Positions 147 through 15,610 of a stretch of DNA of 15,610 bases are shown here, piece by piece. Source of the stretch: Bugula neritina. Taxonomy: Eukaryota; Animalia; Bryozoa. The notes beneath the pieces were generated by a model. The model ran no database searches, was not told where the DNA came from, and saw only the letters and a program-made list of their open reading frames with translations. A program made the position numbers and the translations under genes. The stretch spans positions 1-15,610 of the forward strand of contig CAXIUT010000044.1 of NCBI GenBank assembly GCA_964035545.1, given 5' to 3'. Position 1 is the first letter of the stretch. Each line of letters starts with the position of its first letter.

Positions 147-1393
147 ATGTAACAAAACCCAACAATATTCCTCTTCTTCAACCCAGGCTCTGGTTCTGGC
201 ATCGGAAAAGCTCTAAACGATCAATAAGTAAAAACCATTTAACCAAGATCTCCCGCATAGATTTCAACATCGACTAAACAATCTCTCACACATATTTCTA
301 TAACCTACGTACTCAAAAAGAACAAGGATTTCATCACTTAAAAACCTAAGCAGACAGCAATCAATAACCTATAGTTGCTATTTGCGGTGGCGATGGGACA
401 GTGATGTGGGTAGTAAGCGAACTATCACATTATAAAATAAATCCAAATCCTGTCAATTTATGCATAATACCTTTAGGAACAGGCAACGACTTCTCAATAA
501 ACTTAGGCTGGGGAGGCAGCAAAGACAACCTAACTGACAATTCATTTAAATAGCTAAGAAATTTAATAAGAAGATGGAAAACATCAAAAAGATAATATTT
601 AGATTTATGGTAAGTATAAATTTAAACCTATAAATCTGGTAGTTTCTAAAAAATATAAAACCAAGAATAAGTAACAATCTAACTGAATAAAATAAGCAAA
701 CATTTTTGTAATTATTTTAGTTTTGGCATCGATGCAGCCATTGGTTTCTAATTCGATAAACATAGAACCAATACTAGATTGGGCAACTTTGCTGTCTACG
801 GCATGATGGGTCTAAAAAACAGTATATCTAAATCTAAAAATCTAGGATAACTTATTGAAGTCATGTCAATCGGATAGTAATAGACTATATTTGAAGGAAA
901 TAACAAGACTTTTATAGAGCATATGGGTAATAATTTATTTTAATTCAATTTTGATGATTTAGTGAAAGGAGTGAAAAAAGTAAATAGTTTTCATAATAAT
1001 CAAAATTTACTAGCCTTGAATATCAATAGCTTTATGGGTGGAGCTACAGATATTTGGAAAAAAGCCAAATAAAATACAATTATAAAACAAAAATAGTAAA
1101 TCAAAGAACATAGCCACTCAGATGGTAAAATATAATTTGTCAGTTTTAGTGATACTGGCTCAATCGGTCTTTAAAAAACATTCGGCAGTTGGTAAGTTGG
1201 ATTCGCATAAAGAATCGTGCAAGGATCAGGACCATTTGTCATAAAGTTTAGATAGTATCCCTAAGACAAAGATCATAAAACTTTTATGCAAATCGATGGA
1301 TAGTTTATCAAAGTTTATCAACCTAAAGTTGTTATTATCAAGAAATCTACCTTATTTGTTTAATCTAAAATTAGAGTACTCAATAATAAATGA
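147..1393 (+). CDS. Diacylglycerol kinase (catalytic + accessory domains), join(147..227,248..1393), ~408 aa with UAR=Glu
   Basis: Translation shows IFLFFNPGSG, VAICGGDGTVMWV, IIPLGTGNDFSINLGWG, CNYFSFGIDA, LNINSFMGG, DGKIEFV and MQIDGEF, which are DGK family motifs. One 20-nt intron joins the two frames. Ends at TGA 1391-1393. Confidence 0.93.
228..247 (+). other. 20-nt spliceosomal intron in DGK
   Basis: gtaaaaaccatttaaccaag. Removal joins the NPGSG frame to the GGDG frame. Confidence 0.85.
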
Positions 1394-1414
1394 TCATAAA
1401 TACGTTAAATAAAA

Positions 1415-2373
1415 TCAATCTTGATATATATCTGTCTCGTTAAATTCTTAATCCTTGTTCTAGAAAGTATCATTGCTCTGATAGTTTGTATTTACTTACT
1501 ATTTCTTTAAGTTATTATTCATATTAGCTCCAGATAATTCTGTCTATCTCGTCTAGTTCAATGGTCTCACCTAGTGATGCAGATATTGAATCAATTTGCC
1601 ATGAAGGGCTAGACTAGATACCTCACTCAGATCCACATTTGATAATCCAAACATCAACCTTATATATCTTTTAAATGTAATCAAATGCTCACCTAGTTGA
1701 GTAGAACTCAATAAAATAGGCATAAGTTTTTTAACTTATTCTCTAGTAATAGATCTAACATTTCTAAAACAATTTTATTTCAAAAAACTTTATAACTTCT
1801 TTAAAGCCTGATTCACTATCACGCCTATCATCGTTTTGTATTAATCATAACTCAAATTACAATTCATTTTGCCTTTCCTCAGCTAATCTTTAACTTCCCT
1901 CAAAGGATCATAATTTTTATTACATCTATTTTGTAAACGATACCCCTTAGCAACAAAATCCTTCGCTATCAACCTCTTCTCCTTATACTTCGTTTGCTAC
2001 TGCATAGAACCAAAATTAGTCCTAGTCAACTACTACTTAGTATACGATATCTATATATTGCTCTCTTGAACCATCTCTGGCACTACCTATGTTGCTGTTT
2101 GAAATATTTCACTATCTGGTAACTTCTGGCATAACTTTTGATGAAGGACCTTTACAACTTGCTAGATTGAACAATGTGGCAGCAACTAGTATATCAACTT
2201 TACCACGCCACTCAATACCTATATTAGTTTATATTTACATCCTAGTTGATATCGAGAGAGGATTCTTTGGGAATAAGATCTGCCAGTTATAGCTAGTTAT
2301 AGTGTTAATCATCATTCTCAACATCCATGTTCTCTATATTCTATTGCTTAACTTCCATATCGATCGACTACAT
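1415..2373 (-). CDS. Hypothetical protein, complement(join(1415..2218,2239..2373)), ~312 aa
   Basis: MESIDMEVKQENIENMDVENDDE... then 804 nt open to TGA after a 20-nt intron. No family recognised. Confidence 0.75.
2219..2238 (-). other. 20-nt intron
   Basis: gtaaatataaactaatatag on the minus strand. Without splicing, the frame hits TGA immediately downstream. Confidence 0.75.
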
Positions 2374-2531
2374 TGATTCTAATAATAAATAGACAAACAA
2401 GGATAGTATAAAGAGTCAAAAGTGTGTTTCTATAAACTAATATCACACATTTTGCACATTTTATCAATATGATTCAATAATATGACTGTTTTAATATTAA
2501 TGCCCTTATTATTAAAATTCAATAGTAACAA

Positions 2532-2954
2532 TCATTCCATTATCAATTTTTCAAGCATGTTTCTAAATTATTTATTACTCATTATCTTCTACCCATACTT
2601 ATGCTCACAAGCCTCATCGATCATCTCTCCAGTCAATTTCCCAGAACCAAAAGATACCACCCCACTATCCACATCCTCTTCGATTATCTTATCCACCTTT
2701 AGATGCCCCTCACTCTCCAAAGTAGAACTACTCTGTCCCAACTTCAACTTCTTATTGAACTCTCTCACCAACAACTACTCCTATAAACTTTTAGCTGACT
2801 GCTTGGACTATCCTTCCTTGATAGATGTTTTGGAACAAAACTTGTTCTATGATGATAAGTTGGTTGAAGTTAAGGTAGAGGGAAGGGTATCATTGCTGGT
2901 GTATTATATGACTTGGATGCTCTAGTTGAATTTAAGGGATAGTTTTCTGTTCAT
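2532..2954 (-). CDS. Hypothetical protein, 140 aa (MNRKLSLKFNESIQVIEY...KLIME)
   Basis: ATG in aatcaaaATG context, open to TGA with UAR=Glu. Contains the supplied ORF 2589..2774. Confidence 0.72.
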
Positions 2955-3324
2955 TTTGATTTGTTTGTTTATTTACATAATAGAATTTAAGTTTAGAAGG
3001 TTTAAATAGCCAGTATTCTATTTTTAATTTGGATAAATATCCTCGAATAAATCAATAGCATCAATGTCAAAAGATTATCTTTGAACTTATTAGGTAAAAT
3101 AATGATTTGAAATATAGGTAAAATTAATGATAAAATAATATGGTTTTTTTATGATAAATGAGGATAAATGATGATATTATAGCTTTTAAGTAGATAAAAT
3201 TTTATTTAAAAATATTTTTTCTTTTGTGATTAATTATGAACTTGAATATTAGATTTGTATTTATTATTTGATGTAAAAATCTAAAGAATCGCGCCAGAAA
3301 AGTCTCGCATAGATATTTTCCTAA

Positions 3325-4995
3325 ATGTCTCAAAAAGGAAAACCAAAACCATAGTCAACTCCCAACAACAAAGATGATTAAATCTTCTAAAGCGGACACT
3401 AATCTCCTGCTTTTGGATAATTTATCCCCAATCAAAAAAAATCAAAAAAAGAATTAACCAAACTACAAATCTTCCTCTCTAAAATAAACTAATAATTCTA
3501 GTAAGAAATGAGTTAATACCTACAAAAGTACAAATAAGAATATAAAAAAAATGCACCTTACTATTCAATAGTCCTCTATGAAGACATCCTTTATATCTGG
3601 TCTTTCAAAAACTCATAAAATGATTTAAACAAAAACAAAAAATAAACTCTAGATAAACTCACTTCAGAACTAAGAGATCTCACCAAGAGAAAAGCAGTGA
3701 CTATTACATAGAGAGTATAAAAGAAGTTAGCTAACCTATCTATAGAACAAATCAAATAACACATGAATAGCAATACTGATTTCACATTCAATAGTCAAAA
3801 ACAACTCATCACTAAATCAAAAACTACTACTAGAAGTAACTTTGTTCAATAAGATGCTGCCTTTAGCATCAATACGCCCAGTAAAATTCAATAAAGTGTT
3901 GTTAAAGAAACCCGAAGTGTAATTAAATAAGAAATAAAAGAGAAAAGAATGGCATAAAGTACCAAGAAAAGTGTATTTGATCAATCTATCTATAACTATG
4001 GTAGTAGAACAGTTAAAGAAAGAATTATGATAAGCTATCGTCATGAAAACAACCTTGTATTTCCTTTTAATTAAAGTCTCATTGATATTCATAGAAAAAA
4101 TCAATAAATAGATGGCTAGAGATAATATATAGATATTTAGTCATTGGGGCCTGAGAAAAGCAAGATGCCTTTATCAACTTTTAATAATATAGTCAAGTAT
4201 CTTTAAAAAGTAAACTAAACCAAAGAACCTTAAAGATACAACTAATATATATAAAAAATAAAAGAATAATCTCTCAAGGCATTGAATTAATTCTAAAAGC
4301 TATAAAAAACATAATAAAATATAAATAAAATGAAAGAACTAATATAAAAACTAACTTAAATCAAAAAACTACAATAATAAATCAAGCATTCAAAATAATA
4401 GAAAAAACCTTAATTTTATGAATAAAACAACTAATCAAAAGATTAAAAACAAAAGATAAAACAAACCTCCACAGCCAAGAAAACAAATCAATAAGAACAA
4501 TAAGAATAATAAGAATAACTTTACCAACAAAAACAATAAAAATCAACTGACTTAAAGCCATAATTAGCAAAATAATAATACACTAGGATGATGAAGATGA
4601 TCTGCAATAACATGACTTATTTGGACATAATAAAATAAGATAACACCAAATGGGACCAATACGCCTGGAAAGATTAATAAGATGACATTCTTTATCGTTT
4701 TAAATTCAGTCCTGATTCATACAGAAATGTTTTAATCTGTCTTCTCAGATATAAAAATATTAACATGGTCTTCGAAAGAATCAAATTCCTCAACATCGAC
4801 CTAGATGAGAAACTAAGACAAGAGCTGGACAGTTTGACCTCAAAAGAAGTCAATCGATCTAAAGATGAGCAAAATAATGAGACAAAAAATGAAATATAGG
4901 GCAATTAGAAAGATAAAATGAAGGAAGAAAGTTCTATTGATATCGACCAGGTAAATCGAGAAATGAATTTGGTTTAAATACTTGACTTGTAATGA
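3325..4995 (+). CDS. 556-aa acidic/low-complexity protein, possibly Rap1-like (Myb-like segment plus Rap1-C-like domain)
   Basis: 1671-nt frame with no TGA until 4993. The C-terminal AWKDEEDDIL...LLRYKNINMVFERIKFL resembles the Rap1 C-terminal motif. The ORF is secure but the product is tentative. Confidence 0.8.
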
Positions 4996-5063
4996 TATCA
5001 TAACCAAATATTAATCTATTTATCAATAATACTCATCAAATTAATTTGAATATAATAATATCT

Positions 5064-6673
5064 ATGAGGCACGTATCACTTTATGACGATGACAACTAAA
5101 TCCTCGCAGGACAGCCACATCGTCCCAGCTATAGAACCTCATCAAAACAAAAAAACAAACCTTTTCCATCACATCTTGTCTATCTTTCAATCATAGCTGT
5201 TTTACTCATGATCATCATCTACTTTCTAGTCAGTCAAAATAAGACAGAAAATACATAGTTGAGTCCTGTTGACAAGAAGTTGCTAGAACTATAAAATGAG
5301 ATGAATAAAATGAAAAATAGTAAATAAAAAAATTAAGATTAAATAAAAAAAATGCAAAAATAAATAGAATAACAAAAAAATAAGAAAGAAACCCCTCCTA
5401 GACCTACACCTAGACCTACACCTGTAGCTCCTCGTGGGAAGATACAACAAGTTGGTAATCTAAATAAGCCATAAAACTTTGAAATACAAAAGAAATACTC
5501 TACAAATAAAAACAAAACATAATATATGACTCCTTAACTATAAGTTATTTCATAAAAAAGATAACAAACTCCAGGAAGATCAAAGACAGCGAGTGGTACT
5601 CCATCTTTAATTAAATTTTTATCAAAAAATTAAAAAGATAAAACGTATTTCATTTAATATTTAGAATAGATGAAGTTCTTTATGATTAAAAAACAAGATA
5701 AAATCGTAAAAAATTTCAAATATAAAGAGTTAACTTTTTAGGTAAAAAAAAAAATCTAATAAGTTTCTTTTTGGCATCTTTTAACAACAAAATCGATGAT
5801 TCAAGAGACAAATAACAGCAATAAAAATAGTTATAATAATACAACAGATAAAACAAAGTATGGAATTTTTAACAATATGACTAACTACCCATGTGCATAG
5901 TAGTTCCAGGCTACAACAACAACGCCAAATTTCGTATCGAGTACAATCTAAACTCAATATTCCAACAAAACTACACAAACTACTTCGCAGTCATCATAAA
6001 CGACGCATCGACTGACAACAGCGACTAACTCTATCGTAAATATTTAGATTTTTATAAAATAGATAGAAAAAGATACGCATACATTGAAAACACCGACAGA
6101 AAGACAGCTTTATAAAATATCTATACTGCTACTCATTAATATTGCAGTAATGATTCGATAGTATTGAATATGGACGCAGATGATGAATTTATAGGCAAAA
6201 ATGTGTTGAAAATATTTAACGCTGCTTATCAACAATATAAAACCGGTGTTGTCTATTCTAATTTCTATTGGTACGATCAGGGGAAGAGTACTATGGTTGG
6301 ATTTACTAGCTAATACTCGCAAAATTAAAAGAAAAATGCATTGTATAGAAGATCACCTCAAAGGTTTTCACATCTCAGGTCATATCGAACATAACTCTTC
6401 AGAAAAATAGATAAATCATATTTCCAAGATTCCAATGGTAAGTTTTGGACCAGTGCTTACGATATGGTCATGTACTTTTCTCTTCTAGAACTATCGTGTG
6501 GCAGACATAAGAAGATTCCAGGTTTTCACTATCTCTACAACATCAACACAGGTCTGAATGACTACGCAGTCGATAGAGGAAAACAGGCACGTATCGACCA
6601 GACAGTTCGAAGAGCCAAAGGGTACAAATGCGATGAAGAGTTCAATGAAAGAATGAATAAATAAACCAGATGA
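5064..6673 (+). CDS. Type II membrane glycosyltransferase family 2 (GT-A fold), join(5064..5644,5665..6673), ~529 aa
   Basis: N-terminal TM helix LVYLSIIAVLLMIIIYFLVS, a coiled/Pro-rich stem, then CIVVPGYNN...SIFQQNYTNY...IINDASTD...LNMDADD (DxD)...SHLRSYR...AYD. TGA at 6671-6673. Confidence 0.9.
5645..5664 (+). other. 20-nt intron in GT2 gene
   Basis: gtatttcatttaatatttag. Removal connects the TM/stem frame to the catalytic-domain frame. Confidence 0.7.
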
Positions 6674-6858
6674 TGTTATGACTATCAATGTTATCAGTTT
6701 TTAATTATAAATCAAATGTATTTATGTTTGTTTTTAACAAAAAGACTGTTTAAAGAAATACCTTTCTATATATTATTTGTATTATTGTAGTTATTGATTA
6801 TTAATTATTTGTATAAGCAAACATCTCTAAACTAAATCGATTTTGCTAGTTATAAAAA

Positions 6859-9102
6859 ATGATGTAGTAGCAAGCGAACAAATATTCCAAAGGAGATCTG
6901 GTATTCGCACATTGCACCTAATAAAAAACATGGCCAGCTAAAGTGATATGCCTCATGGATAAAAGTTCATACAAAGTTGATTTTTATAACGAAGCTGCAC
7001 TAGGAATAGTCGAATAAGACGATCTCTAACCTCTAGAATGGGCATCTATCGATAAATATACAAATAAATTCAAAAATAAAATAGTAAAAAATCAAAAAAC
7101 ACTCCTCTAAGCCATCTCTTTTGCCAAAAAAGATTTCTAAAGAAGGCTAGAAATATAAAACGATTAAGTATAAAAATGGATAGGTTTATAACCTACCAAA
7201 TAATAATCATAAAAATTAAATAAAAGATTGTAGGAATAAAAAAATAGACCCGTCAGAAAACCAAAAAATAAACTAGCTGATCTCATGATAGTAAATTAAA
7301 AAAATAAATCACAAAATAATATAAATGTCGAGTAATAAACAGACAAGTCAAAGAACTAACCTGTAAAAGTACAATATGCAACTAGATCATCAACTCGTCA
7401 GAAATAGAAAGCTGATAAATTGAAAAATAAACAAAAGTATCAACCAGCTAAAACAACAAAGCCCAAATCTAAATCAAAATCTAAATTAAAAAGAAAGCAA
7501 AATAAAAGAAATAAAAGCAAATAATCAAAATAAAGAACAGATACTTTATCAATTCCAAATTAGAAAAATATATAACAAAAATCAATATAATCAAGAAGTC
7601 ATACCTAACAACTATCCAGCGAACAAATATCATAATAAGAATAAATAATATAAAAAGAAGAAGATAAAATTGGATAACAAAAAAATAGTTTAAAAGGCAT
7701 ATCAAATTAAAAAGAATAAAATCTGATGAATCTTACGATCAACACTTCATTTACTTTTGCGTCACAGCAAAAAGAATAAACACTTAAATAGTAAAATATT
7801 ATACAAAATAATTAGAATATGCATTATGCAAATAATTAACCTGATTATAACTACAGTTAGATCAACAATTCAAGTGGAATTTAACAATAAAGTTAGTAAA
7901 TTCCTATTATCAATCAAAAACATGTATAATCTATGTAGTAAAGTGTAATAAGAGGGGAAGATTTAAGTCATGAGAAAATTCATAATTTAAGTCAAGAAAG
8001 AGTTCAAGCTGTAAGTCATGATAAATATTTATCATAAAATCGATAGGATGGTGAGATATCTTTAAGTTCATCATATATTAATCAATTCAATATTTAATAA
8101 ATCGTATAAAAAAAATATATTCCAGATATTGCAAATATTGCAGATATTGCTGCTTTACCTTAAGAAAGTTCAGAAATGGAAAATTAAGATGTGAGTTCTA
8201 ATAGATCTTTTTCAAACTAAGCTTTTTATACTGATAGTTTGAGTAAAAAAAGAATGAAAAATTCATAACTTTTAAAACAAATCAGAAACATGCAATAAAA
8301 TAGTAGTAAATAACACTAAATATCAAATAATATCAATAGAATAAATAGCAGTCAAATGGACATATAAATAAAACAAGAACATCAAATCACAAACTAAAAA
8401 ACAAAACAATAAAACCACGAAAACAACTAGATGGTAGAATCAGCATCATAATCATCATAATATCAAAACCGATTACCAAATCTATCCCCAAACCTTCAAC
8501 AAAACCCTTTCCGCAATCTAATCTAAAGACCCCTCCCAGTAAGCAAACTCTAATCCAATATTTCTATCTAACAAGTCCATAAAGAACTCTAATCTTTGGG
8601 CCCAAAATATTTATAGACAACATTCGGCAACTTCTAGATAAAAAAAGATGACTACTTCACGATGGCAACAGGCATTCCTAAACTCACCCAATAACTATCC
8701 AAAATATAGCCGCTATATCCTGGCCAATTGCTAGCAAAATGTCTAAACAACTATCTATAGAAGTTGATAAAATTTGTACCAGGAAACGGAGGTCATATCA
8801 ATTTGCTAATGTGGTAAAAACAGATGTTTATTGCCATTTTGGAAGGAAACCTCATTCCGCTGGAAATAATTTTTGACTAAGATACTATTATGTTAATGAT
8901 CAATTTTGTCAAAGAGTTCAAGGGAAGTAAAAGTCAAAATAGAGCAGATTGTCATGCGTAATTTCTATATACAGTTACACATGTCAAGTATTATATCAAT
9001 CGTTTCAAATCATAAAAAGATGCGATAAATATCAAAAAGAAACATATGATTTCTCAGTATTAGAAAAAAATAGCATAATATGAAAATACAATAACAGTGT
9101 GA
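6859..9102 (+). CDS. PWWP-domain protein, 747 aa (N-terminal PWWP, long low-complexity middle, helical C-terminal region)
   Basis: YSKGDLVFAHCTEEKTWPAKVI...YKVDFYNEAALGIVEEDDLEPL...LLEAISFA matches the PWWP pattern (GDLVWAK..PWWPAKV..Y.V.FF...V...DL.P). The 2244-nt frame is open to TGA 9100-9102. Confidence 0.85.
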
Positions 9103-9108
9103 TTTATA

Positions 9109-9179
9109 TATCATCTATAATAATAGTATAAAGTATGGTCTATAGTAATAACATAAATTATGGTCTATAATAATAACAT
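9109..9179. repeat. Intergenic 25-bp-period tandem repeat (~3 copies)
   Basis: tatggtctatagtaataacat (9134-9154) and tatggtctataataataacat (9159-9179) differ by 1 nt. A degenerate copy tatcatctataataatagtat lies at 9109-9129. Confidence 0.7.
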
Positions 9180-9211
9180 GATTTATAATAATAATATAAA
9201 TTAGTATTAAA

Positions 9212-10117
9212 ATGTTATCAGAAACAATACTAAACAGATAGAATCTAAAACAATTCGGTTCAACAACTAAAGAAACCTCATCTTTACTACAAAACACAAT
9301 CAAACAACTCAAACAGCAAATCAATACCCTACAAATATAAAAATAACAAATACTCAAAAACAATCATTAAGAAATCTGTGATTTGAAACTATAAATACAA
9401 TAATATAAAAAGAAACTGTCAACTTTGACTGATAAATATCTCCTAGAAACTTATACCAAAGAACAAGGAGCAAGTGATAGTGCTAATGATTAAAAATATG
9501 ACAGGTTATCAAGAGAAAAAGAAGTGATTGTTGCCCAGTAGCGAGAGAAACGGTTCAAATTGGAGTAGCAATGTCGAGTGATGAGGTAGTAGATGGTGGG
9601 ATGGCAGAAGATGTGCTAGCAAATGAAATTATAAAAATAAAAAAATATGTAGATCAGTTTAGTATAAAAATTAGATCTATAGTAAAAAAATCGTTTACTA
9701 GAAGAATAGATAAAATCAAAAAAAAACATAATGAACAATCTAAAATAACAAATAAACAAATTAAATATAAATCGATAAAATGTAAACAAACAATAAAGAA
9801 TTCTCAACCAGAAAAGCAAATAATTATAGATCTACTCTCAGTAAATAGGATAATGCAATAAAATGAATGAAATGAAATTGAACCAACAAATTAATCAACT
9901 TATGAATTAGAATGGATTTTTGAAGAATCATATAAAGAAGTTATAAAATATTAATAAAAATCAATGTAATTGTTAGGTTTTGGAAGATAAACATCGGTAG
10001 TTGTAGTATCAACTGAAAAAGGAGTTAGCTTTGACCAAAGTACAACTAACACAACAATACAGCAATAAAATCAGACATAAATAGGATAATTATGGATCAT
10101 AAAGTAAAAGAAAATGA
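9212..10117 (+). CDS. Hypothetical coiled-coil protein, 301 aa
   Basis: ATG 9212 to TGA 10115-10117. E/K/Q/L-rich heptad-like sequence (IKQLKQQINTLQIEKEQ..., LEEKNRLLEEEIKSK). Confidence 0.8.
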
Positions 10118-10125
10118 TTTGTTTA

Positions 10126-10428
10126 TCATTGTTAAAGTTTAACTTGTAAATTTAACTCATTCAAACCAGGTGCAAACGACTTGCCCTACAATATCGTCGT
10201 CTACTCGTTTACTATCTACTGAACCTTCAAATAACTTGCACTCTTTGTCATATCATGCTAAAGTGCCTTGTAAGGAGAATGATCATCGAATTGAGGCACA
10301 GGCGACATCTACTATTTGTTTGAATTTAAAGTCTATGGCTGTATTGGGGGGTCTGTCTTGGCATTCAGCTCGTTGGTTTTCTTGTCGATGGACTTTGACT
10401 GTGTGTTCTTTGTACCCACGCATCCCAT
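10126..10428 (-). CDS. Small 100-aa protein with an N-terminal MGC dual-acylation motif
   Basis: MGCVGTKNTQSKSIDK... open to TGA at 10128-10126. Gly2/Cys3 is the standard myristoylation/palmitoylation signature. Confidence 0.7.
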
Positions 10429-10586
10429 TGTTTAAATATTTTTATCGAAATCGTTATTAAAGTTAGTTTGATTTAAGTTATATTCTAATCACAAATCTTA
10501 GAATGATATCTATTAAACTAAATGAACAAATATATGAATGAATAGATATATGATATTGATGATATGACAATATGATTCTAGCTCAA

Positions 10587-10657
10587 GGGGTTGGGGTTGG
10601 GGTTGGGGTTGGGGTTGGGGTTGGGGTTGGGGTTGGGGTTGGGGTTGGGGTTGGGTT
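10587..10657 (+). repeat. Internal (GGGGTT)n telomere tract, the right end of the first minichromosome
   Basis: About 12 GGGGTT units ending in a GGGTT variant. Polarity matches the left telomere at 1-75. Confidence 0.97.
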
Positions 10658-11967
10658 ATATTGTCCCCTTCATAATTAAACTGACAAGAAAAGATCTAAT
10701 CCTCATGTCCCTCAAGAACCTGCAACATCTTACAGCTCTAAACATCCCATAACCTCGCAGTCCGATCAAAACCAGCAGATAAAATCTTAGTTCCCTGAGG
10801 ATTAAACACCGCCTTTGATATCTCACCCTCATGACCCTTCAAAACAGCCGTACACTCAAAAGTAGACACATTGTATAACCTCATAGTAGTATCGACACTA
10901 GCTGTAACTAAGTTGGTTCCAATGGCGTTGAAGTTAAAGTCAAGGATCTAATCAGTGTGACCTCTCAATACTGACATGCATTGACCTGATCCAACATCCC
11001 ATATACGACACGTTTTGTCAATCGATGCCGTTCCGCACATATACCCTCCAAATTAAAATTGAGCTGATGATATCTAGCCAGAATGACCACGAAGAAGATG
11101 AATTGGCTCACCTGATTTGGTGTCCCAGATCTAAATAGAAGAAAATGTACGATTGCTGTGCCATCGAATGAACCTGTCAAAATTTTATCACCGTCAGCAT
11201 TGAAATTTAAAGAAACGATTTATCCTTAGTGTCCTCGAAGGGTGGAGTGTTCTTTACCTGTTTACAAATCCCATAGCTTAGCTGTTTGGTCCATAGATCC
11301 AGTCGCACATAAACTTTTATGAGGATCAAAAGCAACAGCAACAACTTAGTTCTGATGTCCAGCAAAAGTAGACAACAACTTACCACTATCAGTATCCCAC
11401 AACTTAGCAGTACAATCAAAACTACCAGTCAATATTTTGTCCCTAACTCTCATGATAAGTACCCAAAAGGAACATTAAAAGCCATGGCGTAGACAGCATT
11501 TTTATGCCCCTATAATTTATGTATCAAATTTCCAGTTTAAGTGTCCCATATCTGGCAAGTTCTATCATAGCTACCAGTTATAAATCTACATTATCATTCG
11601 ATTACTTATCGCCATTCTTATTAAAACAACAATTAGTCAATGGCAGAACATGAGCTTTAAGTGTTTTAAAACATTTAAAATGTTGATCTTTTTTCTACTA
11701 CAATTTCAGTATCAATTCTATATTAGTCATTATTAGTACTCTCTATCAACGACTTCAGTTGAGGTTTTTTGCTCTATGTTATAATTGGCTATTCTGCAGC
11801 TATTTCCTATACAAGCTCATCAACATCAGTTCTTTATAAATCAATGTTTACGAACTTGAGAGGTTAAGTAGGTCGATAGATTTGGTCTAGACCTATCCAT
11901 TATTACGGATATATTCTAGTAGAATGCCTGGAGGATAATATCTTAATAGAAATTTTTTGAGTTTCAT
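10657..11967 (-). CDS. DAW1: Dynein assembly factor with WD40 repeats 1 (DAW1/WDR69/ODA16), 3'-truncated at the telomere tract; 5 introns; 403 codons present
   Basis: N-terminus [19 protein letters not shown]...TKSIDLLNL, then [28 protein letters not shown] and WD40 repeats, ending [20 protein letters not shown] with no stop before the telomere. Confidence 0.92.
11131..11150 (-). other. 20-nt intron in DAW1
   Basis: gtacattttcttctatttag. Splicing restores DGTAI|IWD. Confidence 0.92.
11443..11462 (-). other. 20-nt intron in DAW1
   Basis: gtacttatcatgagagttag. Splicing restores FNVPFG|DKILTGSFD. Confidence 0.92.
11586..11605 (-). other. 20-nt intron in DAW1
   Basis: gtaatcgaatgataatgtag. Splicing restores NKNGDK|FITGSYD. 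Confidence 0.92.
11718..11739 (-). other. 22-nt intron in DAW1
   Basis: gtactaataatgactaatatag. Splicing restores SLIEK|LILKLEEK. Confidence 0.85.
11832..11851 (-). other. 20-nt intron in DAW1
   Basis: gtaaacattgatttataaag. Splicing restores DLLNLSSS|TDVDELVEEI. Confidence 0.9.
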
Positions 11968-12034
11968 TTGATGATTTTGTTTTAATTTACAAATATATGA
12001 TAGTAAATAAATTAATGATTGATATTTGATTATA

Positions 12035-12673
12035 ATGAAAGGACAATAAATTTCACCATGGTCCATCTACAACCCGAACAAAGAATATGATCATTAGTTT
12101 TCAGGATAAATTGGAGAAGATCAACCCAAAATCAACCAAAAAATCATAAAAAAAAGAATAACAGTCAAAAGTCATCGTTCATAACAGCTATCAAAACCAT
12201 AAAAAAAGTATTCATCGACTACTACTGTCACACCAAAAACAACTATTGAAGAAGATCATGTGAAATAGATTGAATAATTGCCAAAAATAAGTCAAAAATA
12301 GTTAGTTTAGTATGGATATGGTCTAAAATAATAATACCAAAAATCATTAATACTGACTCTTTTAACATAATAATTAAGAGCAAATGCAGTAGGTTTTTCT
12401 TTAAGACCATAATCTCCAGAATCACCACAAATTAAACAAAAAATAAATCATAAATAAAAAAAAATAGAATTACCTAAAATAACATCACTCAAAGAATGTA
12501 TCATCAGTAACTATCATTTAGAAGAACAATGTTAAAAAAATAATAATATGGATGAAGAAATAATGTGTAAATTGTTAAAACAAAGAATTTAAAGTATAAT
12601 CAGTCAAAAAATTAAAAATAAGTCTAAAAAATATAGAATACCCAGGCAACCTTCACCGTTTAACTTTGTATGA
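12035..12673 (+). CDS. Hypothetical protein, 212 aa (MKGQEISPWSIYNPN...RIPRQPSPFNFV)
   Basis: Open frame with UAR=Glu from ATG 12035 to TGA 12671-12673. Divergent from DAW1 across 67 nt. Confidence 0.72.
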
Positions 12674-12900
12674 TTTTTTTCTTTCTTATTTCTAACATTT
12701 AATTCTATTGATATCTAAAATATAGCTGATTTTGTCGTTTTATCAAAAGTGACATCTTTTCGAAGGTTTTAAAAATAATTTTAATCATAATACATAGAAA
12801 ATAGAGGATTAATTTCATTATTATGATTTAATATATGATTCAAAAATTGATTATATTGATAGATTAAGTATATTTAGGTAGTATTGATAGTATAATCCGA

Positions 12901-15270
12901 TCAAAAAATAGAATCCCAATTATGATCATAATCTTTCCTATCACAAACAGTTGAATTTTCTTTGAGATAATCTCCAATAGGCTTAGTTTTAGTTTTAAGT
13001 TGACTAATATTGATCAAATGTTCATTCGATAGATTGAATGGAGGACTTACTTTTTTACCCAACAATTAATGCTATATTAATAATTATGTACCCACTCTAT
13101 TTTCTAAAAAATAGCATGTTTCTTCAAATTACTATATGAACCATTCAGCCGAGATTATGGATTTTTGTTTAATAAGGTGCTAATGAAAGAGTTGATAGTT
13201 TTATCTGCCATATGTTTAGGAAATTTCAATGATTTATTGATAATTTATCTATATATTTCTAGAGGATCTTCTGCGTCTTAACCATATGGAACAAAACCAG
13301 CCATAAATTAATAAATAACCACACCTAGTGACCACAAATCAACAGGAAATGAATACCCTTTACCTCCCAAAGTCTAAGGAGCCATATAACTAGGAGTACC
13401 AATCATAGTAAAAGTCTTCTAAGTTCCTTTCAATTTTTTACAAGTACCAAGATCGATCAACTTCAAATAACCATCACTACAAACCATCACATTCTCTGGC
13501 TTAAGATCTCGATAGATAAGAGATTTATCATGTAAACTTTAAAGCATGTGCAGAAGTTGAGCAGCATAGAAAGTAGTTTCTTTTGGATTGAGAAGACCTA
13601 TCATACGAATAGCATCGAATAACTATATTCCGTTTATAAATTCAGTAAGGAAGTAGATATAACTTTTATCTTTATATGACCGAATAAATTCCATAATAAA
13701 TGGTGATGAGACTGCAGTCAGTGCCTCTTTTTCATAAATAAGATGCTTTTCAAGTGATACCTTTAAAGTCTATGCCTTTGATATCGATTTCAAAGCATAA
13801 CAGTTTGATTTGTTTTTGTCTGTTACAAGATATACATGGCCGAATTGTCCCTCTCCCAACTTTTTCATCACTTGGAAATCTTACAACTTCAAATTTTTAG
13901 ATATTTCATGCATATTACTTCTATTATTCTTCTGAGCCTAGATCATCTTATTTATTGAGTCACTATTCTGAATAGCTTCGTTCAAACTGCAACCAAATGA
14001 CTTTACTAGTTAGTCCAAAGTAGTCCAAGCTACCTTTCCTGCTTCTTTCATCCTTATATCGAATTTATAAAGGCTTATGGGATCTTCAAAGGACTGAATT
14101 CCATAAATTCTTGAACGTTTTGAACTGTCAGTAATATGATGTTGTCCTTCGGGAATAAAACAAATCATGTTTTTGCAAAAATCATCTTTTTTAACTACTG
14201 TATCACCCATCTTCACTGCTTTCAATTTGAAACAATCAATAGCTTTTTCTATGTATTAATCTGATAGTTTTTCAAAAATTTTACAGCTTTTAAGAGCCTT
14301 AAGCGCCTAATTTCTTAAAATAATGAGAGGAAGACTTCTTCCCAAAGCATTTTCAATATGCTAAATTCCAAGTGCAATCAATTAGACATCTTCAGCAGCT
14401 TTGATAGTATGTCTTCTGACTCCTCCCTTTGTTAAACTAGCATATTATTAAAGAGATTCTCCCTTTGTGACATTTCCTTTGAACTAATTATGTTTAAAAA
14501 GACTCAATTTACCAGATTTGAGTATATACATCGAAGCAGCCAGCTATCCTTCTTTGCATATCTATTTATTTTTTTCAAAACGTTGGTTAATTGCGATTGA
14601 AGCCAACTTATCTTTCTGACTTGTAGTCAAATAATCTTTATAATCAAATAGATACGAAAGAAAGCATTTTTTTAGATGAAGATTCTATTTTACTTATATC
14701 CTTTAGTTATCATACTTGCCATAGCACTTCTGAAGGTCTAACGATCAATAAACCATAAGAATGATGATTTAGATGCTTTGATCGATGCAGAACGAGGTGC
14801 TGAGTAGAGTAACGCTAGCTCACCAAAACCTTATCCAGCTTAAATATTTCTTTTAGCGACTCCATTGATTTAAACTGATAACTTTCCTTAATGAAGTATG
14901 AAGAAAGAACTGGCATTACTACCTTGTTTCATGAGATATTGTCCTTCAAGAACTTTGCATAATTTGAATTTTTCTAATACAAGTTATCTAAGTTCTTTAT
15001 CTTCAATGAGGTTGGTAAAGGTGAAATGACTTTTAAGACTTTTAAGGATTAGTGCTTTATCAGATGCTGTCTTTTTTTGCATAATTTCCATAAAGTTTTA
15101 ATAGATTTGATTGTCATAGGTTGCCCTTAATGCTCCCAACTTCTTTGATTTCCTTTTACCCTAAATCATATCAAAACTACCTCTTCCTGTTTAGATTCTT
15201 GTTTACCTTACAATTTTAAATCCATGATACTACTAAGTAGTCTATTGTCCTTTCTCTATGAGGTTTCCAT
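12901..15270 (-). CDS. cGMP-dependent protein kinase-like (alveolate PKG type), complement(join(12901..13071,13092..14635,14656..15160,15181..15270)), ~769 aa
   Basis: cNMP-binding domain with GFGELALLYSAPRSASI plus two degenerate cNMP domains. Kinase motifs LGEGQFGHVYLV, YALK, IYRDLKPEN, IDLGT, GTPSYMAPE and DLWSLGV, and a C-terminal WDSIF. Confidence 0.92.
13072..13091 (-). other. 20-nt intron in PKG
   Basis: gtacataattattaatatag. Splicing restores FEKIEW|HELLGKKVSPPF (AGC tail). Confidence 0.9.
14636..14655 (-). other. 20-nt intron in PKG
   Basis: gtatctatttgattataaag. Splicing restores ENRIFIEKNAFFH|YLTTSQKDKLA. Confidence 0.88.
15161..15180 (-). other. 20-nt intron in PKG (5')
   Basis: gtagttttgatatgatttag. 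Joins ATG 15270 in frame; the alternative is a start at Met ~15170 with no splicing. Confidence 0.7.
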
Positions 15271-15529
15271 GATCTAATATAAATTCTTCTAATGAAAGAA
15301 ATCTTTAAATATAAAAAGGAAGGATAAAAATATTGTTTGGTAGATAATAATTAACCTAGAATTGTAATAAACTTGATTTCTGATGATAAAAATAAGAAAG
15401 TAATAAAAATAAGATTTATTAATTTTTTTTTTCTGAGAAGATGATATTCTATTTGATATAAATTGTAGCTCATTAATATTTGATAATAATCAATCCCTTA
15501 TAAATATCAAATGAGTCTATTCATTGGCA

Positions 15530-15610
15530 GGGGTTGGGGTTGGGGTTGGGGTTGGGGTTGGGGTTGGGGGTTGGGGTTGGGGTTGGGGTTGGGGTTGGGT
15601 TGGGGTTGGG
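15530..15610 (+). repeat. Right telomere (GGGGTT)n
   Basis: GGGGTT array to the window end, with single G5 and G3 variants. Confidence 0.98.

Follow-up and report, generated by a model that had tools for sequence, protein, structure and literature searches.

A ciliate mini-chromosome that very probably reads UAA and UAG as glutamate, in a Bugula neritina genome assembly

A stretch of 15,610 nucleotides filed under the bryozoan Bugula neritina (GenBank assembly GCA_964035545.1, contig CAXIUT010000044.1, forward strand) carries genes whose reading frames hold many TAA and TAG codons. This window, as the whole 15.6-kb stretch is called here, is an entire contig (C53) of a 216-Mb assembly with 321 contigs. 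It very probably belongs to a ciliate that uses the peritrich nuclear code (NCBI translation table 30), in which UAA and UAG both specify glutamate and UGA is the only stop. In this reading UAA and UAG are ordinary Glu codons of the ciliate, with UGA as the sole terminator; UAA would be read by a tRNA(UUA) that the partial assembly did not capture; the suppressor tRNAs would be charged with glutamate; and eRF1 would have lost recognition of UAR (UAA or UAG). A preliminary description, made from the sequence alone, had proposed that both codons mean glutamate. The profile test, the orthologue codon pairs, the polymorphisms and the eRF1 alignment described below agree on this point.

Codons were counted in four genes, a diacylglycerol kinase (DGK), a family 2 glycosyltransferase (GT2), a DAW1-like WD40 gene and a cGMP-dependent protein kinase (PKG). 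The 1629 coding codons include 55 TAA and 24 TAG, next to 39 GAA and 14 GAG, and not a single TGA. The triplet TGA occurs 686 times in the window on both strands, and about 36 would be expected per 1629 random triplets; 79 TAA and TAG codons with no TGA are far beyond chance. UAR supplies about 60% of the Glu codons in the counted genes. The second exon of DGK (384 codons) holds 23 TAA and 6 TAG, the GT2 domain 6 TAA in 259 codons, and PKG 20 TAA and 13 TAG among 741 codons counted. The in-frame codons that the preliminary description had named by position are all where it put them: TAG at 13374-13376 and 13623-13625 and TAA at 13308-13310 on the minus strand, TAA at 1133-1135 and TAG at 1301-1303 on the plus strand, and an acidic run, TAA GAA TAA TAA GAA TAA, at 4501-4518, in frame with an open reading frame at 3175-4992. 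Three DAW1 motifs that it had given without coordinates (LEGHKN, GHQNEVV and GHEGEIV) were located by orthologue alignment.

Distant PKG homologues provide a measure of what the two codons mean. A 48-residue piece of the kinase matched 29 fragments in a library of 1.8 billion proteins, and a longer match (P0019) led to 119 full-length PKGs. The window PKG was aligned to the homologues with an X at every TAA and TAG, and a Codetta-style column-likelihood test was applied. With the 119 full-length PKGs, E is the best amino acid for TAA over 18 columns, the next being 26 nats worse, and the best for TAG over 11 columns, with D 6.3 and K 7.8 nats worse. The control codons decode as expected: E is obtained for GAA and GAG, Q for CAA and CAG, K for AAA and AAG, and D for GAT and GAC. 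The E content of PKG is 8.6% if TAR (TAA or TAG) is counted as E and 4.2% if it is not; the homologues have a mean of 7.3 +/- 0.7%. Composition leans towards glutamate, weakly when taken alone.

Individual PKG sites, all on the minus strand, can be read against the same homologues and against three orthologues from related ciliates, two in JGI metagenomes (L044 and L047) and one in an NCBI assembly (L045). The TAG at 13374-13376 falls on the invariant APE-motif Glu of the kinase, where 124 of 124 homologues have E; the codon is GAA in L047 and L044 and TAA in L045. The TAA at 13308-13310, in IY-E-FM, stands where 121 of 124 homologues have E, and is GAA or GAG in all three orthologues. Another TAA (13539-13541) lies directly before the catalytic loop, with E in 111 of 125 homologues; the piece that follows it begins at PKA residue 157 in solved structures. 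TAA 14690-14692 aligns with E in 87 of 105 homologues, and TAA 13278-13280 with E in 86 and D in 22 of 124. Opposite the TAG at 13623-13625, in the motif G-I-E-L-F, 19 of 26 close fragments have E, and 100 of 127 distant PKGs have D; the orthologue codons are GAG in L047 and L044 and TAA in L045.

Related ciliates allow codons to be compared directly. Through fragments that share 50-93% identity with proteins of the window, contigs were reached that have orthologues of PKG (the three named above), DAW1 (L050 and L051) and DGK (L052 and L053), and codon pairs were collected at well-aligned columns of DGK, DAW1 and PKG against five related ciliate contigs. The 65 partners of TAA comprise 34 GAR (GAA or GAG), 19 TAR, 1 CAR, 1 AAR and 4 GAY codons; the 52 partners of TAG comprise 22 GAR, 20 TAR, 1 CAR, 2 AAR and 4 GAY. 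The combined share of GAR and TAR is 82% for TAA (53/65) and 81% for TAG (42/52), no different from that of the true Glu codons, 79% for GAA and 77% for GAG (p=0.82 and 0.83). The same share is 12% for CAA, 0% for CAG, 5% for AAA, 5% for AAG and 8% for GAT; TAA compared with CAA and AAA, and TAG compared with CAA/CAG and AAA/AAG, give p values between 1e-11 and 1e-31. At least one GAR partner was found at 28 of 41 TAA sites and 15 of 27 TAG sites, and the relatives carry TAA or TAG at window Glu codons of motifs that do not vary across kinases, LGEGQFG and DLKPEN among them. The DGK codon TAA 1133-1135 (accessory domain, DGKIE) is GAG in L053; TAG 1301-1303, in the motif QIDG-E, is TAG there too, a conserved site that is uninformative alone. 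The orthologue contigs L044, L045, L047, L050, L051 and L053 use the code of the window.

The L045 contig is JBFTWQ010001234.1 of assembly GCA_041192925.1, and its sequence is also present in run SRR27696250 of a project on the parasitic copepod Ikanecator primus (PMC11196259). At least one further public NCBI assembly thus includes, without a flag, contigs of related ciliates that share the code. The source of L052 is a second assembly, GCA_013565675.1.

Natural variation points in the same direction. Contigs of four other sequencing runs (X1, X2, X3 and X5) were placed on positions 9900-15500, where they depart from the window at many sites. The listed differences within exons number 16: 13 third-position synonymous changes, one S>T change and two changes from TAR to GAR. 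The latter, both on the minus strand and both present in all four runs, are TAA to GAA at 14256-14258 (14258 A>C) and TAG to GAG at 14307-14309 (14309 A>C). First-position changes at TAA and TAG amid such constraint are as expected if TAR is synonymous with GAR. Pseudogene decay, or assembly errors, in an organism with the standard code would be another source of in-frame TAA and TAG, but the same positions hold TAR or GAR in orthologues 50-90% identical in protein sequence, 15 of the 16 population differences are synonymous if TAR is Glu, and the window sequence recurs in sequencing runs from three studies. The chance of such decay or error is practically nil, and this explanation is refuted.

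A second chromosome gives a similar picture. The ciliate eRF1 gene on contig C314 (L035:7039-8373, minus strand) contains many in-frame TAA and TAG codons. When it is aligned with the eRF1 exons of the animal host, TAG falls on four conserved E positions and TAA on one; the remaining TAR sites are in variable columns (R, Q, P, A).

Two other ciliate codes must be weighed against these data. In table 6, UAA and UAG specify glutamine. A few TAR sites do align with Q, for example one eRF1 TAA opposite a host Q and the TAA at 13881-13883 opposite CAA in L045, but a CAR partner was seen once among 65 pairs of TAA and once among 52 of TAG, which does not exceed the rate of true GAA (4/58). Moreover, the profile test does not place Q among its four best amino acids, TAG or TAA stands in invariant Glu columns such as that of the APE motif, and the polymorphisms run from TAR to GAR, not from TAR to CAR. 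A glutamine code is extremely improbable and, for the window genes, refuted. The split code of Oligohymenophorea sp. PL0344, in which UAA is Lys and UAG is Glu, could draw on the TAA at 13245-13247, which stands in a column that is mostly K in distant PKGs; at this very codon, however, L045 has GAA. AAR partners are found for 1 of 65 TAA, five conserved-E columns hold TAA, and a TAA to GAA polymorphism lies amid synonymous changes. The split code, to which we give almost no credence, is excluded. The profile and orthologue tests and the polymorphisms sustain the proposal of the preliminary description that the code differs from both and equals table 30.

The genes examined end at TGA. The C-terminus of PKG is NWDSIF followed by TGA, and its orthologues end NWDEVF and NWDQSF, each followed by TGA; a standard-code homologue ends GWDAEF. 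DGK and its orthologue reach TGA within one residue of each other, and their conservation continues beyond a TAA nine codons upstream. The beta-tubulin gene on contig C10 ends with the usual acidic tail, EEEEA, and then TGA; the eRF1 reading frame closes at TGA just past an acidic tail. Altogether five gene ends lie at TGA at homologous C-termini, as judged from homology and not from transcripts. Neither termination at TAA or TAG nor a sense TGA was seen in the examined genes, whose ends are inferred in this way. These gene ends, with no TGA in 1629 coding codons, bear out the earlier proposal that UGA is the sole stop. An ambiguous or context-dependent code of the Condylostoma type, in which UAR also terminates some genes or UGA is sometimes selenocysteine or tryptophan, would be harder to see with ends that are not mapped on transcripts, but it is very unlikely given that all five ends examined are at TGA at the homologous C-terminus, that the coding codons are free of TGA, and that DGK conservation runs past the TAA nine codons before the stop.

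The beta-tubulin gene (L010:1519-2841, minus strand) contains 37 GAA or GAG codons and no TAA or TAG. Set against the window genes, where TAR makes up about 60% of Glu codons, this suggests that the reassigned codons are avoided in genes with high expression.

Parts of a matching decoding apparatus are found in the assembly. A pattern search identified two tRNA(CUA) genes, one on C10 (L039:1469-1540) and the other on C256 (L041:1490-1561, minus strand), both of which are telomere-type contigs. Both tRNA genes fold as cloverleaves followed by T runs (RNA polymerase III terminators), and BLAST with tRNA(CUA) returned just these two copies from the assembly. A search of the assembly with RF00005 scored 63 candidates, mostly from the host. 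Matches to a relaxed UUA pattern were host tRNA-Lys and organelle-like sequences, and matches to a T-arm pattern were overwhelmed by a tRNA-like repeat of the host. A scan of metagenomes with the tRNA body found a nearly identical tRNA(CUA) on 24 AT-rich contigs and a tRNA(UUA), 61/72 identical to the tRNA(CUA), on nine AT-rich contigs. The clade has both decoders, because relatives carry tRNA(CUA) and tRNA(UUA). One of the nine contigs, L142, is syntenic with C256 (a neighbouring kinesin is 65% identical), and its tRNA(UUA) at L142:4578-4649 is the positional counterpart of the C256 tRNA(CUA), which would imply that the anticodon of a single locus has switched between UUA and CUA. The UAA decoder of the ciliate is probably on a chromosome absent from the partial assembly. 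With the anticodon left free, the suppressor tRNA body also occurs with TTC, CTC and TTG. The 23 other tRNAs with which it was compared included no tRNA-Glu or tRNA-Gln of a ciliate.

The ciliate eRF1 differs from that of the host in all three stop-recognition motifs, with GSV for GTS in the GTS loop, SQIKD for SNIKS in the NIKS region and YNCDSRF for YLCDNKF in the YxCxxxF motif. In human eRF1, substitutions of T32 shift activity towards UGA alone (PMC3384315). Swart et al. saw no simple rule that leads from eRF1 substitutions to codes, and single changes are uninformative on specificity (PMC4967479).

Several points weigh against the reading of both codons as glutamate by a peritrich: i) In variable columns, K, D, G or Q stands opposite some of the TAR sites. 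These residues can be taken as ordinary substitution, as true GAA codons behave alike. ii) UUA and CUA tRNAs had been predicted, and the prediction holds for CUA, with its two genes; tRNA(UUA) was not found in the 216-Mb assembly with two patterns and is seen only in the environmental relatives. UAA cannot be read by a CUA anticodon. iii) The body of the suppressor tRNA is of a type common to tRNA-Glu and tRNA-Gln, and charging with glutamate is deduced from the codon evidence. iv) The evidence is at the DNA level, all sequence matches found being DNA contigs. v) Sessilid-specific 18S primers (PMC4103560) gave no convincing match in the assembly, where the presence of ciliate rDNA is not established. 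Primer Peri974F had no match at up to 3 mismatches, and Peri1403R had one match with 2 mismatches, no more than a reversed control. Rfam found no rRNA on the seven loci examined.

Long frames emerge when TGA alone is taken as a stop, and gene models were fixed by orthologue alignment. On stop-free pieces, Pfam recognized DAGK_cat, DAGK_acc, Glycos_transf_2, WD40, Pkinase and cNMP_binding. The DGK gene (147-1393, plus strand) starts at ATG 147 and has exons 147-227 and 248-1390, followed by TGA at 1391-1393; it is identified by its DAGK_cat and DAGK_acc domains and by the orthologue on L053, which is 57% identical and has the same TGA end. The Lys/Glu-rich open reading frame at 3175-4992 is on the plus strand. 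The GT2 domain (5885-6673, plus strand) rests on Glycos_transf_2 matches in two pieces of a TGA-free frame that ends at 6670, and the start and end of its gene are not fixed. The DAW1-like gene (10658-11967, minus strand) starts at ATG 11967, has one confirmed 20-nt intron (11150-11131) and is truncated at 10658; it was assigned from WD40 domains and alignments to L050 and L051, and fragments with 83-93% identity to it bear the JGI name dynein assembly factor with WDR repeat domains 1. The PKG gene (12901-15270, minus strand) starts at ATG 15270 and ends at TGA 12903-12901. Its exons, 15270-15181, 15160-14656, 14635-13092 and 13071-12904, come from orthologue alignment, and its identity from the Pkinase and cNMP_binding domains and the three orthologues. 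Apicomplexan PKGs are the best solved-structure matches of the kinase.

The five introns fixed by orthologue alignment, at 228-247 on the plus strand and at 15180-15161, 14655-14636, 13091-13072 and 11150-11131 on the minus strand, are all exactly 20 nt long and of the form GTA..AG. The L047 orthologue has 20-nt introns at both PKG positions compared. Introns of 20 nt rank among the shortest known spliceosomal introns. Some TAGs that appear to be in frame are the AG ends of such introns, for example those at 15161-15163 and 11131-11133.

The DAW1 gene is cut by an internal telomere-like tract, (GGGGTT)n in right-telomere orientation, at 10587-10657 on the plus strand. This tract removes the 3' end of the gene; L050 and L051 have a further WD repeat after FNYEGD.I. 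The join is not unique to the assembly, because one 4862-nt contig of run X1 was placed on both sides of the tract. X1 may itself be the source data of the assembly. Internal (GGGGTT)n tracts in the same orientation are also present in contigs C10, C11, C14, C15, C18 and C24, which begin with C4A2 repeats.

The window is capped by telomere repeats, (CCCCAA)n at 1-75 and (GGGGTT)n at 15530-15610 of the plus strand, and its GC content is 24-38%. Many small contigs of the assembly likewise have C4A2 at the start and G4T2 at the end. Contigs C1-C9 are of another kind, 10-35 Mb each, with eRF1 and tubulin exons that lack in-frame stops; the eRF1 exons on C1 are of animal type. The window DNA turns up in sequencing runs from three studies, filed under three coded organism labels; many further runs under the first of these labels, guessed to be RNA, lack it. 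The telomere caps, the animal-type large contigs and the pattern of recurrence across runs lead to the reading of the window as a ciliate macronuclear mini-chromosome contig that shares the assembly with nine contigs of chromosome scale from a standard-code animal host. The ciliate is read as having been carried with the animal sample as an epibiont, parasite or contaminant.

Other contigs of the assembly have features of their own. A segment of C214 (L027; C214:41188-45349) packs 13 tRNA genes into 4 kb, with 28% GC and an organelle-like look, and C73 (about 21% GC in the part examined) has two identical copies, at 6135 and 17707, of an unusual tRNA whose anticodon loop is short; C214 and C73 may be organelle genomes, either of the ciliate or of its host. 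On host contigs C1-C6, a tRNA-like element whose anticodon is GCA and whose T arm is common to all copies occurs about 146 times, probably a tRNA-derived repeat family.

Table 30 was described for Vorticella and Opisthonecta and, later, for Campanella umbellaria and Carchesium polypinum. In the literature it is regarded as the sole known code with UAR as glutamate and as having arisen once, in Peritrichia (PMC10553269, PMC11687900, PMC4967479). The code of the window ciliate shows no difference from it, with UAA and UAG as Glu and UGA as sole stop. With the table 6 ciliates (Tetrahymena, Paramecium, Oxytricha) it shares the joint reassignment of UAR and the UGA stop, as well as C4A2/G4T2 telomeres like those of Tetrahymena, but the amino acid is Glu instead of Gln. 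With Oligohymenophorea sp. PL0344 (PMC10553269) it shares UAG as Glu, tRNA(CUA) suppressor genes and the UGA stop, whereas UAA, which has a Lys partner in 1/65 pairs, is Glu in the window ciliate. The finding is an instance of an already known code, not a new code. It offers a clean worked example in which orthologue codon pairs and natural TAR/GAR polymorphisms agree with profile methods. It also identifies about 300 small contigs within an animal assembly as ciliate. Annotation of such contigs with the standard code will fragment their genes, and the genes of relatives are already fragmented in public protein sets, where the database matches are pieces of 50-180 residues that end at TAA or TAG.

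The organism is likely to be a peritrich. Its association with animals, including the relative in the copepod data, the abundance of its relatives in environmental metagenomes, its Tetrahymena-type telomeres and its tiny introns of narrow length range all fit a peritrich, without proving it; narrow distributions of intron length are reported for three peritrichs (PMC13685798). The telomere repeat type seems to vary within the clade: L047, from a relative that shares the code and whose PKG is 65% identical, has G4T4 repeats at its contig end (L047:16551-16578), whereas L051 (2-30) and L053 (1-22) start with C4A2, as does the window with its C4A2/G4T2 ends. It is unlikely that the ciliate and its environmental relatives lie outside the peritrichs, as a lineage in which both UAR codons became Glu a second time, independently. 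If this were true, glutamate decoding of UAR would have had a second origin, with a bearing on the question of why the reassignments of UAA and UAG go together.

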